From Selaginella moellendorffii (lineage: Eukaryota; Plantae; Lycopodiophyta), in NCBI RefSeq assembly GCF_000143415.4, contig NW_003314324.1, forward strand, positions 1,005,379-1,069,378: 64,000 nt of DNA, written 5' to 3'. Positions 13,850-62,329 of the stretch are shown here, piece after piece. The stretch's first letter is position 1. Every line of letters begins with the position of its first letter. The position numbers and the translations under genes were made by a program. The notes under the pieces were generated by a model. It worked only from the letters and a program-made list of their open reading frames with translations. It was not told the origin of the DNA and did not search any database.

Positions 13850-15560
13850 TCACAAAAGGAGATTAAAATTTTATGCACAAATATCAATGAGATGTTAGAG
13901 AAAGGTGTTATTTGCAAGTCTTAAAATCTTTGGGTATGTGAACTATCTTGTGATAATCTTCATAGGAATATTCAATATTGTATTGACTATTATCTATTAA
14001 ATGATGTGACTATCCTATATATGTACCTATTCCACACACTATCAATCTTTTAGATCATGTAAGGAGAAGTCATTTATTCATCAAGTTAGATCTTTCTTTT
14101 AGATACTAGCAAATGCTAATAGCAAAGGAGGATATTCTTAAAATTGTTTTTTATACACAATTTAGTATTTGTACGAGTTTTAGTGATGCCATTTAATTTG
14201 AAAATGCTTTAATGACTTTCTAGCATATGATGAATGAGGTTCTTTTTGATATGCTGAAAGTGACTGCTAACTTTATTAATGATGACATGATCCACTCAAA
14301 AGGGACATTTATGAAAAGTTGGTTTTAAGCTAAAGTGGTCAAAGTGTGATAAAGAGTGAAGATTGTTGAAGTAAGAGTGAAATATATTCTAGATGAATTG
14401 ATGTTAAATGAACCCTCTGATAGTACTCTGAAAGAAGGATAAAAGGGTCACTAGTTTATTCACATAAAGACTCTTCATTATTTATACAACTTCTTATTTC
14501 TTGAAAGAACTATCTATCAAGACCTTCCATTGTAATAGCACTAACAGAATATTATTAATGCTAAGGCCTTCACATAGAAAATAGAGCATACAAATTTAGA
14601 AGATGTCAACAACATTAATATATATGGCAAATCTCATCACATACCCAACAATAAATATTATGGCTATAACCATGTCTTTGCCTTTATTTTTGGGCAACAC
14701 CAGTGTCTATCTCTATCAAAACAAGAGCATGTGGAGTTGAAACACATATAATTATAAATGGGAAAAGTGGTATTTTATAATATTGTGCTAATCAAAGAGT
14801 ATTGTCAAGAGTGGTAAGGGCAACTGCATTCATAAGTGCTAATCACAATATGCTCAACTTAATGATATATTTAGCTTTGCATAAAGTAAAAGGTTTCAAA
14901 AGCAAATATCAAATTGCATACTTGACATAGACAGCCCCTAATAAAAATGATGCAATTGCTAAAATGCATCATTAGAGTTGTTAGCATGCCTAAATACATA
15001 CTTGAAGACTTCTAAAAGAAAACTTCAATTCACATAAATGGCTATATTTAAACTATTCTACCACTCTAGTGTTGTCCTTTAAGACATGTGGGAAATTCAT
15101 GCAAATACTGGGCATCATCCCAAGAATAATAAATGGCAATTATTATAAAGTGATAGAATTAATAATATACATTCCTAAGGAAGAAATTTGGCCAAACATG
15201 AGGATTAATAATAGAAGCTAAACCATGTGTCATGAATACCACTATCAATTAAGCTTAAGTATTCAATTGCAACTATATAACATCAAATAACTACACCTAT
15301 TGTTACTCCAGAGTCAAAGGAAGAGAAGAGATTGCAAATGAGTATATTACTTTGCTACTAGATTTAAATTGAAAACACAAATCCAAACACTCCTTAAGGA
15401 TAATCAAAGTTGCCCCCTCACTTCTATCAATGTCAATATATGAAATATAAAAATGTGTATATTTAATTAGCCCAAAAACCTTAACTTATATATAGGAGTG
15501 AGTGTTCTAAATTGAAATCAATCTAATAGCTATCAAAATTCTATTACACTAATAAATACA
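13850..15560. mobile_element. Rearranged, AT-eroded remnant of the short-LTR Gypsy family (RT on plus strand, gag and LTR on minus strand)
   Basis: 13850-14345 is collinear with RT at about 22480-23020. About 14400-14480 is the reverse complement of 21750-21840. 15460-15550 is the reverse complement of the LTR core. Confidence 0.78.
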
Positions 15561-16100
15561 CATAATTTACCTTATTATTAGTTCTCTCAATAAAATAAAA
15601 TAAAGAAAAAATACTATTGTGAGTATAATCTACATATTCCAATTTAGCTATAATACTAAAGAGAATGAATAAAACAAGAAAGAAAATATAAGAAGGAACA
15701 TAAAGATAAAAAATACAATGAGGAAAAACTTAAACCAATCCTAGGTTATATACTTATAAATTATAGCCATTGCTAATTATAAAATTATAGACAACATCTA
15801 CTATGGGGTAGCCACGTAAGTGCTGGTTCTCCTAGTCTTTTCGAATTCCATGCTTGCCTATTACAACAAGAATAATGAATTTGGACAAGCTATATAACTG
15901 TTTAATTTGGTGCCCAGCAGAGATCTGCAACCTGGAACTCTGTGCTTATGTAAGTGGAGATCACCACTAAAAGTGGCATCGGCCCAAGAAGCTCGACCTG
16001 GTGAAGAAGTAGAAAGCTTTCCTTCCTGGAGTCCACCGGCAATTCCTTCTTCGAGACCATGGCGTTGTTGATCAAAACAAGCTTGACGTCGGCCATAAGA

Positions 16101-19100
16101 CTAAGATGGTTGAGGAGATTTTACCTTTGAGCACTCAACGGCCTCAAGCGCAAGCTTCCACTGCTTGTCCACAAGCTTCCACCGCGCCACGTCCTTGATG
16201 TCACAGCGTCCCACAACTTGCTCAAAGAACAGACCCTTAGGAAGCTCGTAAGGTAGCTTTTCCATTAGACTGCGGATGGTTGCATCCCTGTTCTGCATCT
16301 CTTCTTGCAACCTGGTTACCTTTGCCTCAAAGGCACCTCGTGCGGCGTTGTTGTTGTTTACCGCCATCTTCTCTGCAAGAGCTTCCACTTTCCTGTCAAA
16401 AACACAGTGTCATAATCAAGTTGTGGAGTTCACGCGAGTGTATCACCTGCGATCGTCTTCCTGTTGCGTGACGAGCTTGTCCAGCTCACGACGGACAATT
16501 GATAAGCCTTCAAACACGAGGCAGACAGACAGTTTCCCATCGATAACACTTATGCCACAGGCGGGAGGAACTTCAAAGATTCTTTTCACAACCTGCAAAT
16601 CACAGTGAGAACACCGACCAGAAAACAGGAGCTTACTTGCCTTCACAGAAGAAAGCTTCGCCAGCGTTAAAACTTCCAAAACTTTGGAGTTGAAGAGCCC
16701 CGCCCGGTCCTCGTCTTCAGTAACAAGGTAACACTCTGGCCTGGCATCCGCATAGCGCGTCAAGAATACAATGGGCTACAAAGGACGACGAATGCAAACC
16801 TTTGCCTTGGCTTCAGCTCTGCAGCTGCATGAAGACTCCGTGCTGTCTTTACGACGGAGCTTATAAGCTCCATCTCCTTCTCAACTTCGTGATTGCTCCA
16901 CCCCTGAAGACAAAGGAAAAGAACAACGTTAGGTAGTGTCAAAAGAATCATGGTTTTTACCGGCTTCTCTGTGGGATAGCTTGCGGTCATAATCGAAGAC
17001 CGCTCTTCACTCTTTTTCTTGTGAGGTAGCCTCTGCCACAGCTCTTCGGTAATGAACGGCATAAACGGGTGCAGCATGCGTAATCCCGAATCCAGACAAA
17101 TATATAGAGTGGACCTCGTAGCAGCTTTACCATCCTCCCCCAGCTCCTCGGAAGATAGAAGCGGCTTCACTAGCTCGATAAAGACGTCGCACAGAGAGTA
17201 TTGCCACCACGAATAAACTGCGCTTGAGGCTCCAGATAAATCATATCTAGCAAAACTCTTGTTGATCTTGCAGACTATGTCGTTCAAGGAGGACAAAATC
17301 CATTTGCAGGACCAGGGAAGCGAGGATATGTCGAGATCTTCCTCTGGCTCAAAGCCGTCATGAAAGTTGAGTCTCACAAAACGGACAGCATTCCACAACT
17401 TGTTGCACCACTGGCGGTAGCCAAGAAACCGCTGGATGTTCAAGTTCATGTTCTCGGCCTGCAAAACAGGATGGCGTCAAACAACAAGATGCAAGAAAAC
17501 CATACCTGTGCTGTATAGGCGATAAGTCCAAACCGCAGAGCGTCGACTCCACACTCGGGGATCCCTCGAGGAAAATCTTTGTGGAGCCCCTCAGTGGCTT
17601 GTTTGAGCTCTGACGGTTGCAGGTTGAGCAGAGCTAACTTGGCCACTAAATCATCCAAAGATATCCCGGATATCACGTCAAGAGGATCAATCACGTTTCC
17701 CAGGGACTTGGACATCTTGCGCTTGTGAGCATCCCTCACCATCCCGTGCAGCAAAACCTGCATACCAACGTTTCCCATTTGTCCAACGAAAACTGCTAAA
17801 ACATACCGTTTTGAAAGGAAGCTGGCCGGTCAGCTGTGTCCCCAGCATCACCATCCGCGCCACCCAGAAAAACAATATATCATGTCCCGTCTCCAAAACT
17901 GTTGTGGGATAAAAGGCAGCGTAGTCGGCTGTAGAATCAGGCCATCCAAGCGAGGAGAATGGGAAAAGTCCCGATGAAAACCACGTATCAAGAACATCGG
18001 GGTCATGCTGCAACTTGAACGTAGCACCCGGAAATCTTTGCTTGATCTCTGCATCTGCAGCCTGTTCGGAGTCTGCAACCGCCCAGTGATCATCGTAGAT
18101 TCCAAACGTCTGATCTTCGTTCGCGTCCAATACGGCATACCAGGCGGGTATCCTGTGTCCCCACCAAAGCTGGCGAGATACACACCAGTCTTCAATATTT
18201 TCCAGCCACCTTCACAACAAAACATGACAAATAAGAACGCGCAAAAAGAGAAGGAACTTGCCTGAACCAGATGTCTGCAAAAGACGACGGAACAATCTGA
18301 AGCTCGTTGTTTCTCAAGGCCTCACAGGCTCGCGCAGCCATTTCCTTGCAATCCACGTACCACTGAGGCTTCATCATCGGCTCCAGCACATCGCTTGACC
18401 TTGAACAAATGGCAAGAGGCTTCTTGTGAGGAAACTTCCCTCGGAAAAGTTTCTGGAGTTACCAATCCTTAGAGTTCATTAAAGTTACCAAAACCAAGCT
18501 TTCTTTTACCTTGCGTTCTAAAGCTTCCAAAACTCGTTCCCGAGCAATGTAGCGCTTGAGGCCCTCAAATTCATGGCCGCCATTCTCGTTGATCCTTCCA
18601 TCGTCCGTGAGGATGTTGATAAACTCAAGACCGTGCCTCTTTCCTCTTTCGAAATCCTTTTCATCGTGTGCCGGAGTAATCTGCAAAAAGAGAATGGCAT
18701 CACGTAGTATAAGAAAGAAAAAACCACATACCTTTACAGCTCCAGTACCTTCATTTATCTTCACTGTCGAGTCCTTTATGACGGGAATCCTTCTCCCGTT
18801 GAACGGATGAACGAGGAACTTCCCGTGAAGATGTGCAAATCTCGGATCGTCTGGGTGAACAGCAACAGCGGTGTCTCCAAACATGGTTTCCGGTCGCGTG
18901 GTGGCAACCACAATCTCTTCAGAGCTGCCCTCCACCGGATACGCAAAATGAAACATCCAACCAAATGGGACTTTCTTGTCATAGCCGGGTACCGACAGCG
19001 ATGTAGCCTCAACGTCTCCTGTGTGCTCAACTTCAATGTCCGAGATGGCAGTCTTGAGAGAGCAGTCCCACTTGACCATGCGGTTGGCCCTAAGACAAGA

Positions 19101-19902
19101 AAAACGTAGTCAATCACTCACGTTGATGTACACATACCTGTAAATCAGTCCCGCTTTATATAACCGCACAAAAGCTTCAGTTACAGCGCGTGACCTCTGC
19201 AGATCCATTGTGAAGCACTGTCCGGAAGAACAATTAATTGCGAGATGGTAAAAAAGGGAGGGGAAAAAAAGCTTGTAAACCTCTCGAGACCAATCTAGCG
19301 ATGCTCCCATTGTCCGGAGTTGAGAACAAATGGCTCCTCCATACTCTGTCTTCCACTCCCAAACTTTCTCGACAAACGCATCTCTCCCGAGATCATGCCG
19401 GGTAAGATTCTGCGTGGATGCGAGCTTCTTCTCGACCACCACCTGCGTAGCAATCCCTGCATGATCGACTCCAGGCAACCACAAAGTCACGCGGCCGCTC
19501 ATTCGGGAATGCCGGACAAGAGCATCCTAAATCACACACCAACACAAGAGTTACAAAAAATCGATGTTACACCAAAACCGGCTATACCTGCACAGACACG
19601 GTAAGAGCATGGCCGAGGTGCAAATGCCCCGTCACGTTTGGTGGTGGCAACACCTTCGCCACGAAGAAGGATGAGAGTTCACTACGAAGTAAAAACGTTT
19701 ACATTTCTTCTACCATAACGAATTTTGGTTCAGTACTGGCCGCATCCGCTCCAAAGAATCCACACGCCTCCCACCAAGAATACCAGCTAAAGAAGAAGCG
19801 GATGAGATTGCTAAATGACCGAGACACTTACCCAGCCTGAACGTCCGCAGGATTGTAGCCCGGCTCCATTGTTGGATCCAGGCGCTTTTTTTCCGCCGCC
19901 AT
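16101..19902 (-). CDS. VARS: Valine--tRNA ligase (cytosolic type, divergent), multi-exon, with an in-frame C-terminal F-box-like extension
   Basis: ATG at 19902 ([18 protein letters not shown]). Motifs [13 protein letters not shown] (HIGH), [11 protein letters not shown], editing domain ATTRPET and [45 protein letters not shown], anticodon domain [16 protein letters not shown] and a coiled-coil arm. Short GT-AG introns. Confidence 0.93.
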
Positions 19903-19981: not shown

Positions 19982-20009
19982 GAACCCTAATTTCAGGGTT
20001 TTAGGGTTT
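19982..20009 (-). promoter_or_regulatory. Telo-box (AAACCCTA) cluster upstream of ValRS
   Basis: AAACCCTAAAACCCTG on the minus strand plus an opposite AACCCTAA, about 80-105 bp upstream of the ATG. Telo-boxes are typical of plant translation-machinery genes. Confidence 0.6.
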
Positions 20010-20427: not shown

Positions 20428-23400
20428 CGTGAGGGCCAAGTGTACAGCTACAATGCCCTATACTAATATTAGCATAGTGGGATTTTGGTAGCCGTCGGAT
20501 TGGTTTTAATCCGGACCACTCGCTTCTATATATAAACTAAAGTTTTTGGGTTAATTGATATGCACATTTTTTGTATTCCCTTTTCATATTCCAAACACTC
20601 ACATTGGTGGAGGTGAAGGGCACCTTTGATTGTCCCTGAGGAGTGCTTAGATTTGGGAATTTGGTTTAAATGTAGCTTTTGCATCGTTTAAATCTAGCTT
20701 TTTCCATTTCCTTTCTTTTGTTATTTCTTTTTAGGATTTTGGTTTAAATCTAGCTTTTTGCATTGTCTAAATTTACCATTTCTTTCTAGCTTTTTGTCAT
20801 TTCTCTTTTTTTGCTCTTTCTTTATTCGTCTTCATGGTAGATCAGCAATCTCCTCCTTTGACTTAGGAGTAGCAGTTGGTACAATTGCTTGATGCTATGT
20901 GCTTGCAATTGAACAATCAAACTTAGTTGATGGCGGTGTTCATGGCATGTGGTATAACTCTTCATACTCTTGGTGCGAATCTTCACATTCGGCTGGAGTT
21001 CTTTTGCATGAATCCTGGGGATGATGTGTACCATTGGTTCAATCACTTCATAGTGATTGCCATATATCATTTTTGGGATGATGCTCGACGTTTGTATGAG
21101 TTTCCCACGTGTCTCCAAGGGATGGTGTTGTAGTGGTACAATAGTTTGTGCGTAGCCACTCGTGGGGATTGGAGTGTTCTCCTGGACGTTTTTAAACGTG
21201 TCTTCGGACATGCCGACAACTGTGATGATGCCTTCCAACAATTGCATCATCTTCGCTAAGGGCCATCTGAGTCAATGATACAATTTGGCGTTCGTTTCCA
21301 AAATCTTTTGCTTCGTGCAGAGCCAAATATGTTGGAGCGGATCAAGTTAGGAATGTTGTGGCCAATACTTCATCACGATCTTGTCAGACTTGTGCATGCA
21401 CTTACTCCCGCCACCCTTGACGATGCTCTTCGCTTGGCACAACATTATGAGATATCGCCTCTTCCACTTCTTACTGCACGTCCTTCAGCTTTCACTTCTT
21501 ATGGGTGATGGTCTTGTTCCAATAGAGGTTGATGCTATTGCTGCTTAAGTCCAAGAACAAGGGCGAGGACGTGGTCGTGGCTGTGATGTTCGATATTAGG
21601 CGTGTGATGAAGTTGGTCATATTTATAGGTATTGTCGGCGTTTTCCGGATTGGTGACTTCCATTTCCTAGGTGGAGACCTTAGTGTTAGCAATGTCCTGT
21701 TAGTGCTGCTGCAGTGGAAGGTTTGGACACTGAGATGCATCCGGGAAATGAGGAGTTGCGCAAGTAATGGAGGGACCTTGCGCGAATAAGCCAATGACCC
21801 CTCCATCTTTCTTTCGGGAGTATCATCAAGGGGTTCACTCGGCATCGGTTCATCCAGTGTTTACTTTCCAAGTTCGTTTACATAACAAGAGGTCTTCTAT
21901 TCTCTCCGTGTTGGTTGATATAGGTTCAAGTTTATCTTCTATTGCTCAACTTATTGCCACTTGTGTCGTGTGACGGAACCAATTTTCATTCTTTATGGCA
22001 ATAGCAATACACATGCATGTGCACAGGATGAGGTAGACCTAGTTGTGCATATGGGTGATCTCGAGCTTGAGTTGCAGTTATTGCGAGTGGTGCCTAATTA
22101 AGCTTTTGACCTCATTCTTGGTATAGATTAGTTGCAGCACAATCATGCCAAATGTGATTTTGAGGCTTCTCCCCCTTGTCTCATACTTCCTTATGTTTCA
22201 TCCATTTCTTTCACTTCCGTACTTTTTTGTCCCTTTACTTTTACCTCTGCTTCCATTACTTTTGTTCCCCCACTATTTCCTCCTATATTTCTGTCTTGTT
22301 CTGCTTTTCCCTTTTCCGATCCCTCCGACGATCTTTGTGTTGCAGCAGTTGACTAACTCATGAAGGAGTATTCTGATTTATTTGAATTTGACTAATCATC
22401 TGGGGCCAAGATTGCCACACGTCATCCGATTCCAACCGGGGATGCTCGTCCAATCAATGTTCCTGTTCGTCATTAGTCACCCAAGGAAATCAAGATTTTA
22501 CATGCAAATGTCAAGAAGATGTTAGACAAGGGTGTTATTCAGAAGTCGCGGAGTCCTTGGGCATGTGAACCTCATCTTGTGACGAAGCCTAATGGGAGTA
22601 TTCATTTCTACATTGACTATTATCCGTTAAATGAAGTGATGATCCCAGATGTGTACCCTCTTCCTCACACTATTGATCTCTTGGATCGTCTGAGGCGAAG
22701 TCGTTGGTTCACCAAGCTAGATCTTACTTCTAGATACTGGCAAATACCCATGGCCGAAGAAGATATTCCTAAGATTGCTTTTTGTACACCATTTGGTTTG
22801 TACGAGTTTTTAGTGATACCGTTTAGTTTGAATAATGTTCCAACAACTTTCCAGTGGATGATGGATGAGGTTATTTGCGATATGCCGAAGGTGACTGCTA
22901 ACTTCATTGATGATGTCTTGATCCACTCGAAGGGGATGTGGAAGGAGCACGTTCGTGATGTTTGTAAAGTGTTGAATCAACTACGCAACGTTGGTTTAAA
23001 GTTGAAATGGTCGAAGTGCATGTTTGGGTCTAAGGACACACTTATCTTGGGTACCATATTTCTCAAAAGGATTTGCAAGTTGATCCTGACAAACTTATGG
23101 CTATTCTAAAGTTCCTTACTTCAAAGTGTGTGAATGATGTGCAGTGCTTCCTTGGCAAGGTGTAGTATCTCGGTCATTTTGTGGATCATCTTTCTGATTG
23201 CACTACACCATTGTGAGCATTGTTGAAGTCATTAATGTCATCTTTCATCTAGTCTCCGGATTGTGAGTGGGCGTTCGTGGATCTCAAAGAGTTATTGATG
23301 ACTCCTCTGGTTTTGGCATATCCTGACTACACTCGATCTTTTATTTTGCGTGTGGATGCTTCTGACATTGGTCTTGGAGGTGTGTTGATGCAAGAGAGCT

Positions 23401-24983
23401 CGAGTGTGTCTGGTTAGTGCCATCCCATTGCGTATATAAGCCATACATTACAGCCAGCGGAGATGAATTACTCCACGACAGAGAAGGAGTGTTTAGCAGC
23501 AGTCTAGGGTTTCTACTTCATGCATATCTACATGGTTCTCGGACGCTACTTGAAGGTGACCATGTTGTTGTTACTTCATTATAGAAGCGGAAGAACCTGA
23601 TTGGTTGTACTGCTCGATGGGCTTTGAAGCTCTAGATATATGATTTTGATGTTGTTCATCGCCCAGAGAGTTCTATGGCTGATGTTGATGCCCTTTCTTG
23701 AGCTCCTCTTCCTTCTCCACTCTCTTCTCATGTTTTTGACAAGCCTGTTATTCCAGTATCTGTGAATTTTCTAGACAAGGATTCTATATCATTGGCAATT
23801 GTTGTACTTGATGTTCAATGTCCACAAGGCACAGAGCAAGATCTCCCTTCTCTTGATGAGGTTTGCAAGGCTCAAAAGATTGAGCCGTGGATTCGAAAGC
23901 TTTGAGATGGGTTTGAGAATCCTGCATCACTTGCTGTTGGGTGGAAGTTGGTGCTCTTGCTAGTGCCTTTGGAACTACTGTTGGATACTTCCTCCTCAAT
24001 CAATTGGTGTTCCAGCATTTTTGTCCAGAGCGGATTCTTTCGGATAATGGTCCCATATTTATGGCTGAGGCATTTCATGTTTTAACGTCTCGGTTGGGGA
24101 AACACCACACTTTCACGAGTGCTTATCATCCACAATCAAATGGTCTGGTGGAACGGCTCGTTCGGACATTCAAAGGGATGATTACAAAGTATGTGAACTT
24201 TCAGCATTTGGATTGAGATGGTTATTTGCCATCTGTTCGGTATGCATATGTCACAGGAGTGCAAAGTTCTATTGGTGCTTCACTATATAAACTCATGATC
24301 CAATATTACCAACAAAGCTGGGTTTACCTTTGCGATTGCCACAAGCTGCAAATGCTAAGTCGTGGGATTAGTATTTGACAAGCATTCTTCCACTTGTCTG
24401 AGTAGAGTCTGCTAAACATTTAGGCCGTGTATAAGTGGAACAACAACGGCACTACAACTCCCATCATTGTCCACCTGTGAAGGACAAAGTAGATGATTTA
24501 GTGTTAGTCAATTTTCCCCATTTTACAGCACGTGGTTTATCTAAGGGGCTCTTTGCACAGTGGAAAGGACCGTATCAGGTGTTGTGGCAAGTTGGACCGC
24601 AAGTTTATGAGGTTCGGCATGACGTCCAGTAGGCTAATCCTCCAGAGATTGTGCATGTGCAGCAGTTAAAATATTTCATACAAAGGGATTATGAGCAATT
24701 AATACCATCTACAGATCTATCGATGCCTTCTCCTAACGTTCCTTTAGATCCCAACCATTTACAAGAGAACCCTAATGGTCTTTCATTATTCCGAAAGGAG
24801 GGGATGATGTGAAGGCCAAGTGTACAGCTATGATGCCATATACTAATATTAGCATAATGGAATTTTGGTAACTGTTAGATTGGTTTCAATTTGGACCACT
24901 CGCTCCTGTATATAAGCTAGGGTTTTTGGGTTAATTGATATGCATATTTTTTGTATTCCCTTTCCATATTCCAAGCACTCATA
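20428..24983 (+). mobile_element. Two-LTR degenerate Ty3/Gypsy non-chromovirus with 176-bp LTRs and a tRNA-Ala-like PBS
   Basis: LTRs at 20428-20603 and 24808-24983. PBS TGGTGGAGGTG. PPT AAAGGAGGGG. RT SPWACEPHLVTKPNG..FIDDVLIHS, RNase H, integrase ILSDNG..AYHPQSNGLVER and WKGPY. No chromodomain seen. Stops and an internal integrase deletion near 23925. Confidence 0.9.
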
Positions 24984-60890: not shown

Positions 60891-62329
60891 TACTTCCTGT
60901 TAATCAATTAAAAAACTAATGGATGTGTTCAAAGTTTCATCTTGTCCTCCTTTGACATGCACAAATAATAGGAGGTGTCCTATCATTTCTCAACTGGAAT
61001 ATATGGAGCTTTTACTAGGCAATTATAAATTACAACAAGAATCTAAAGTTCCCATAGAACTATCAATGTAATTATTAATAACCATGATAGAAACAAAACT
61101 TAAAGCCATGGCATAAACATTAATCTACTATAAAATCCTAATAAATTAGATGTAATTTCATTGTAATTGCCAAATGCTCAAACTAATTTTGAAGCTATAA
61201 TTTTGAACTAAAGCAAAAGATTTCAAAAACCACTACAATCCACAAAATATGATTTTAGCAAACAATATATCTTTATCTCTAACTTTGCCCATCATTAATA
61301 CAAATTTATAGCCATCAGTTAATGTCAAATTTCTTTTAGGCTTTTGGCTGATATGGGTTAGGGCTGGTGATGGAGATATCCTTTTTTGAAGCTTCCTGGG
61401 CAGAGTCTCTTGAGAGCGAGATCTGTTTGCAAGGCTTGGAAAGAAGTAATTGATTCTCCATGGTCATGCCACTTGGTTCTGGGTACAAGGTATTGTCTCC
61501 TATCAACCACTTGATGGCATACTCCCCACCAAAGATCAATTGCCCATTGTTTCCGCCATCGCGCCCTGCCATCCATGCCATTGCAATGCCAATGGAGCTG
61601 AGTGGAGGTGAGCGCTCAAGAAAAGAAGAGAGCCTAGCAATGTGAGCGAGAGATATATATAGTATAGAGATGGTCTCATTGTGGAGTACGTTTTCTTTTC
61701 CTTGCCGATGTGGCAGATGTCTGCCAGGTGGGAAGCTGCGATTTGCTACTTGGGGCGAGGAGGGTATATATAGTATACATTGTGCCACATGGCAGGAGTA
61801 CCGTTGGTCGTGTAGAGCACATTTAGGTTAAAAGGAGATTGCCAATGTGGCAGATACTTTTAGGTTAACAGGAGCTTGCTGATTGTGGAGGTGGGACTGT
61901 TAACTTGATTCAACCGTTGGCAGCTGTCGGATCGAGTCAGGTTCTCTGCAAGAACATGGTTGACAATTGCCAGGTTCTCCAGAACCGCCAGGTTCTAGAG
62001 AACCTCCTCATCCTCCAATAACATTATTCCATATGTCTGTTAACAGTCTCGCCACAGCCCGTTAAGGCTGTTCTTGGGCACGGGCTCGCTCGTTCCTGCT
62101 CGGTAGGAACGTGCTCACCCTACCCAGGAACTGCCTCATTCTTTCTTTCAGACGTTTACTTCTTCATGCTTTTCAACGCCGCCCAGCAACTTTTGGTTCG
62201 ATCTGACAGTTGAAATCCGCAGATATGATCCGACAAAACGTGTTGCTGTCTGATCATACTGGCGTGCTCAGCCAGTATGATCAGAGCTGGAAACTATCAC
62301 AACTTAAAAGCAGTGTTACGCCACAGACT

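Follow-up and report, generated by a model that had tools for sequence, protein, structure and literature searches.

An F-box-like tail at the C-terminus of a transcribed valyl-tRNA synthetase in the spikemoss Selaginella moellendorffii

The valyl-tRNA synthetase gene

The window, a stretch of 64,000 nucleotides of Selaginella moellendorffii DNA, carries on its minus strand a gene for valyl-tRNA synthetase (ValRS). The coding region occupies positions 16101–19902, running from an ATG at 19902 to a TAG stop codon at 16101–16103, and is divided by many short introns. The family searches were carried out exon by exon, hence the valS figures apply to each exon ORF: in all four large exon ORFs, the top match is a valS equivalog model (E 1e-34 to 1e-51), with much weaker scores for the ileS and leuS models. 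Pfam recognizes tRNA-synt_1 and Anticodon_1 (PF08264, E = 7.6e-35) in the exons. The signature motifs HIGH—which reads HLGH here—and KMSKS are present, as are the motifs of the CP1 editing domain, including TPAHD. With every signature motif preserved, the enzyme is predicted to remain able to charge tRNA-Val. Only 14 residues separate the start from the conserved YNP..V...WY.WWE block, and the protein therefore has neither an N-terminal extension nor a transit peptide. The gene is an intact, expressed ValRS gene of the cytosolic type.

Four introns of the 3′ part of the gene, all on the minus strand, are located at 16904–16960 (57 nt, GT..AG), 16741–16799 (59 nt, GT..AG), 16593–16640 (48 nt, GC..AG), and 16393–16446 (54 nt, GT..AG). 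Introns of 48–59 nt would be in keeping with Selaginella moellendorffii. The 48-nt intron features the donor GCAAGT rather than GT; its joint is found in the RNA data sets X13, X1, and X7, and the three runs agree. This joint has an ambiguity of 3 nt, within which only the GC..AG placement corresponds to a recognized splice class. The 54-nt intron is the last one and cuts an Arg codon (AG|G): the preceding exon ends with ..CGC AG at 16447, and the last exon opens with G AAA GTG, in frame with it.

The last exon (16101–16392, minus strand) comprises the end of the coiled coil, an F-box-like tail, and the stop codon. Its ValRS-derived part, 16254–16392, encodes the loop and the second helix of the terminal coiled coil and ends with ..SLMEKL. 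It is followed by an extension of 50 codons past the canonical ValRS end (16104–16253; PYELPKG...SPQPS). The F-box-like core of the tail lies at about 16137–16259 and shows the pattern LP-x2-L ... R ... K-x-V-x-K-x-W.

The surroundings of the gene bear several further features. A telo-box-like motif, AAACCCTAA, is located at 20001–20009 (minus strand), approximately 100 nt upstream of the ValRS ATG, and is followed by AACCCT..AGGGTT. Motifs of this type are a typical feature of the promoters of translation-apparatus genes in plants; the window contains three copies, a number that does not exceed chance expectation (9 of 100 shuffles). Approximately 2.6 kb upstream of the ValRS start, a Ty3/gypsy-type retroelement occupies 22519–24216 (plus strand), with reverse-transcriptase and integrase ORFs that are interrupted by stops, as judged by eye from the translations. 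AT-rich blocks with a G+C of 0.21–0.30 lie on both sides of the ValRS gene. Roughly 45 kb from the tail, at 61350–61480 (plus strand), there is an F-box fragment, ..LKLPGQSLLRARSVCKAWKEVIDSP.., in which the frame covers just the latter half of the domain. What may be the first half (..GDGDILF) is one base out of frame across six T, and the reading frame stops soon after; probably, the fragment is either a pseudogene of F-box type or belongs to an unusually spliced gene.

Transcript and reading frame of the fusion

The RNA data comprise raw reads of two RNA-seq runs (X12 and X13) together with contigs of two other runs (X1 and X7), stemming from three studies, at an overall depth of 1–5x obtained from 12% of each run. 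The joint of the last intron, 16392|16447, is seen in raw reads—three in X12 and one in X13—and in the spliced contigs X1 and X7. All read pairs have one orientation, as expected for minus-strand RNA. In the X1 contig, four introns are spliced out, and no joint follows from 16391 to 15900; therefore, the F-box-like stretch at approximately 16137–16259 is part of the mature mRNA, in frame. The in-frame fusion of ValRS with an F-box-like stretch, as read from the DNA in an earlier note, is thus borne out by RNA: the joint connects the two last exons, the exon is unbroken, and both raw reads and spliced contig cross the last intron and the F-box-like stretch and continue to about 15900. The transcript neither ends nor is spliced ahead of 16256.

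The RNA depth over the tail amounts to 1–3 reads and is similar to that of the upstream exons. The 3′ UTR (15900–16100, minus strand) measures approximately 200 nt with a G+C of 0.49. Transcript contigs stop at 15900, right after the motif AATTAAA, and beyond this point the G+C is only 0.26. Such a fusion could be mimicked by misassembly, by intron retention, or by a transcript whose translation never reaches the end, and the low depth would favor a reading of this kind. However, the joint and the unbroken exon are seen consistently in the two raw runs and in the contigs of two runs, which together stem from three studies, and the RNA data contain no splice joint that leaves the last exon ahead of the stop. 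An artifact is, hence, extremely improbable.

The transcribed allele differs from the window at seven places. In the 3′ UTR, three SNPs and a 12-nt insertion are found (15995, 16021, 16033, and 16087); in the coding part (16707, 17015, and 17111), two changes are synonymous (D and S), and one, at 17015, turns K into N. It is probably the other haplotype or stems from another accession. Contig X7 is labeled as another organism and shows the same allele as X1; because of this identity, it does not inform on conservation. For the last exon, no difference between window and RNA is listed at a read depth of 1–3. The tail carries zero allelic changes compared with about 2.3 expected (P ~0.1), while the 200-nt UTR has three SNPs and the 12-nt indel. 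This lack of change and the conserved core residues described below are mild pointers to constraint—weak ones, with the allelic part at P ~0.1.

The canonical end of ValRS

A search with the anticodon-domain exon retrieved 120 partial ValRS proteins of 140–410 aa from many organisms. Nine other eukaryotic ValRS C-termini end with ..F.KLL, and MAFFT pairs this end with ..SLMEKL of the spikemoss protein. The 50-residue extension, therefore, starts where other ValRS proteins stop. Similarity to the tail was found in none of the 120 partial proteins. A search for homologues of the 96-aa last exon among proteins of 53–168 aa gave no match; longer relatives lie outside this range. Full-text literature searches on the topic yielded no tRNA synthetase described as bearing an F-box.

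The coiled coil itself deviates from the canonical form in its loop: the GY.EKVPE motif is lost, leaving a 5-residue gap in the MAFFT alignment. A truncated second helix had first been read off the 30–45 residues after the K-V/T-P motif. This idea was dropped because the alignment shows that the motif is lost and that the helix reaches the canonical end. The Pfam model of the C-terminal coiled coil, PF10458, has no match on the last exon, though the ValRS-derived part of the exon aligns with the coiled coils of the nine ValRS proteins, over roughly their last 50 residues. AF2 run on the single sequence of the last exon predicts a helix for residues 2–45 with a pLDDT of up to 93; the tail is predicted with low confidence.

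Likeness of the tail to F-boxes

The F-box match had been proposed from a consensus read by eye, and it stands at the level of profile comparison and shuffling and not at the level of Pfam. Neither PF00646 nor PF12937 gives a match at E ≤ 10, with either the 96-aa exon or the 51-aa tail as query. As a positive control, a 33-residue piece of the F-box fragment described above (61380–61478) reaches 28.2 bits on PF00646, where the cut-off is 20.5. Because this fragment passes and the tail fails, the tail has diverged further than an ordinary F-box piece in this genome.

A phmmer search of the tail against 1.84 billion representative proteins yielded six matches. Four are coiled-coil or repetitive proteins: a pair of the OmpA family, a chitin-binding-domain protein, and P0001, which is mucin-like by the name given in its source only. 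The other two are plant F-box proteins, P0003 (Nepenthes gracilis GMH22234.1) and P0004 (Penstemon), both aligned on their Pfam F-boxes. These two were chosen by their likeness to the tail as the best of 1.84 billion, and their scores stem partly from several F-box copies. A search with the F-box region of P0003 added only three proteins, the F-box/FBA proteins P0007–P0009, which were used as the test set because P0003 and P0004 had been selected by similarity to the tail. Against P0007–P0009, the tail obtains Smith–Waterman scores of 68–75, compared with 27 ± 4.4 and a maximum of 54 for 1,000 shuffles, that is, about 10 SD. An HMM built from the same three proteins gives the tail 22.6 bits, and the best of 20,000 shuffles reaches 17.6. 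With hhalign, the tail matches a seven-sequence F-box alignment at 96.6% (E = 6e-10) over 41 columns with an ungapped core. In a protein language-model search, the only named clusters near the tail are F-box families.

The landmarks LP-x2-L..R..K..R.K.V.K.W of the tail have the spacing of plant F-boxes, and all positions of the hydrophobic core are hydrophobic or cysteine. The RLP of the F-box consensus reads RCD. A phmmer search against PDB sequences returned no F-box protein; its sole row, an acyl-CoA-binding protein at E = 1.1, is a chance match.

The likeness to the F-box is more than chance. A read-through into the former 3′ UTR, giving a tail that never was an F-box, would agree with the blank Pfam and PDB sequence searches and with the selection of the first two matches from 1.84 billion proteins. 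In addition, 51 open codons at 50% G+C are estimated to arise by chance about 9% of the time. Yet such a tail would account neither for the distance from shuffles seen with F-box proteins chosen independently of it nor for their HMM ranking it above 20,000 of 20,000 shuffles, the gapless core in hhalign, and the exclusively F-box clusters of the language-model search. A chance likeness is accordingly very unlikely. From its sequence, the tail is very probably derived from an F-box without being a Pfam-grade member of the family.

Predicted structure and downstream sequence

AF2 with a shallow alignment of nine sequences places helices at residues 10–18, 23–28, and 34–47, the positions of H1–H3 of an F-box, with a mean pLDDT of only 56.5; this test is partly circular because the F-box alignment was its input. 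Foldseek of this model (pLDDT 56.5) against PDB structures gave no match.

F-box proteins need a recruiting domain behind the F-box, which normally precedes the substrate-binding domain. In the spikemoss protein, the stop codon follows 18 residues past the conserved W of the tail. No substrate-recruiting domain—FBA, Kelch, LRR, WD40, or other—was found after the tail: no downstream frame resembles FBA, and the downstream frames have no Pfam match. When F-box/FBA proteins are compared with 15001–16500 in all frames, the similarity ends at about 16119, and nothing is detected downstream. A frameshifted ORF at 15902–16096 had been taken as the trace of a dead F-box gene. This ORF of 64 codons exists, lies in the ValRS 3′ UTR, and has a different frame; it has no Pfam match and bears no likeness to the region that F-box proteins have behind their F-box, and because F-box-family similarity is lacking, a trailing dead F-box gene is not backed by the sequence. 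Language-model matches of the same ORF to the N-termini of short-chain dehydrogenases share few features and were taken as chance. Within 15863–16120 (minus strand), two overlapping frames of the 3′ UTR are open for 72 and 79 codons. Pfam has no match on these two long open frames, which may have arisen by chance or be left over from a decayed coding sequence. With its coding-like G+C (0.49), the 3′ UTR leaves room for a remnant decayed past recognition.

These findings bear on whether the tail works as an F-box. A working tail would dock ValRS onto SKP1 and CUL1, and the protein could then act as an SCF substrate receptor with a partner linked to tRNA or valine, sequester SKP1, or be regulated via SKP1. 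This would fit the significant F-box homology in the Smith–Waterman, HMM, and hhalign comparisons; the retention of LP, R, K-x-V-x-K-x-W, and all hydrophobic core positions; the three helices at H1–H3 positions in the shallow-alignment AF2 model; the RNA depth, which equals that of the rest of the mRNA; and the identity of the alleles in the tail. Set against this are the lack of a match to either Pfam F-box model, in contrast to the genuine F-box fragment of this window, the replacement of RLP by RCD, the pLDDT of 56 together with the blank Foldseek search, and the absence of the tail from the other ValRS sequences examined. Its extreme C-terminal place, with nothing behind it, is also at odds with the usual order of F-box proteins. 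A working F-box is thus rather unlikely, and it is doubtful that the tail, as a functional C-terminal F-box, makes ValRS the substrate-recognition arm of an SCF or puts it under SCF control.

Proposed origin of the tail

The explanation favored here, with modest confidence, is that the tail is a tolerated passenger, a piece of a diverged F-box that was captured where the ValRS frame used to stop. The 5′ part of an F-box gene, or a piece copied from such a gene, would have come to adjoin the stop codon. Upon loss of the stop, the frame would have been prolonged to an end inside the captured piece, such that only the F-box part is in frame. The F-box likeness appears to start four to five residues past the end of other ValRS proteins. 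The tail would most likely bind SKP1 weakly or not at all and would not be a working SCF receptor. This passenger reading is preferred because the tail fails the Pfam models and has no substrate-binding domain behind it. Two points speak against it: all core positions are hydrophobic or cysteine, a pattern also expected if a folded F-box were under selection, and, more weakly, the alleles do not differ in the tail. The account of the capture is unproven, since neither a donor gene nor a remnant of the rest of the F-box gene was found.

Both outcomes would be of interest. If working, an F-box on a synthetase would add a novel type to the known appendages and directly connect ubiquitin ligases with tRNA charging; such a link between aminoacylation and ubiquitination through a ValRS F-box, if true, is not known to have been described before. 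If the tail is inert, it would be a clean and datable case of a scrap of a fast-evolving family joining a housekeeping protein by stop loss.

Comparison with known systems

The spikemoss protein shares with eukaryotic cytosolic ValRS, including the plant proteins P0036, P0103, and P0121, the HIGH, KMSKS, and CP1 editing motifs, the anticodon-binding domain, and, judging by alignment and AF2, the terminal coiled coil. It features four differences compared with these proteins: 50 extra C-terminal residues; the loss of the GY-x-EKVPE motif in the coiled-coil loop; the lack of an N-terminal extension before WY-x-WWE; and an anticodon domain that is only 44–58% identical to those of other plants.

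Aminoacyl-tRNA synthetases have, time and again, acquired additional functions through small added domains; the known noncatalytic ones include the WHEP, EMAPII-like, GST-like, and UNE domains. The spikemoss fusion would follow the same plan: a housekeeping synthetase with a small interaction module at one end. In contrast to the tail, which is known from one species so far, those domains are long conserved and have shown partners.

The plant FBA-type F-boxes P0007–P0009 and P0003 are 23–36% identical to the tail over approximately 45 residues in the multiple alignment, and by BLASTP the identity to P0003 reaches 42% over 50 residues. The tail has LP-x2-L, R, K, R, and K-x-V-x-K-x-W in common with them at matching spacing, whereas it fails PF00646 and PF12937 and carries RCD in place of RLP. 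Plant F-box receptors bear their F-box N-terminally; the tail, in contrast, forms the C-terminus of an enzyme and is followed by no FBA, Kelch, or LRR domain.

Turnover is rapid among the F-box families of plants—a process termed genomic drift—and has left many pseudogenes and fragments (Hua et al. 2011, PMC3030570). Like the plant FBX pseudogenes and short-lived loci of that study (PMC3030570), the tail is a diverged F-box that lacks a functional recruitment module, and the window contains another F-box fragment, whose frame is broken. It differs from FBX pseudogenes in that it is kept in the ORF of an essential-type gene and is transcribed together with that gene.
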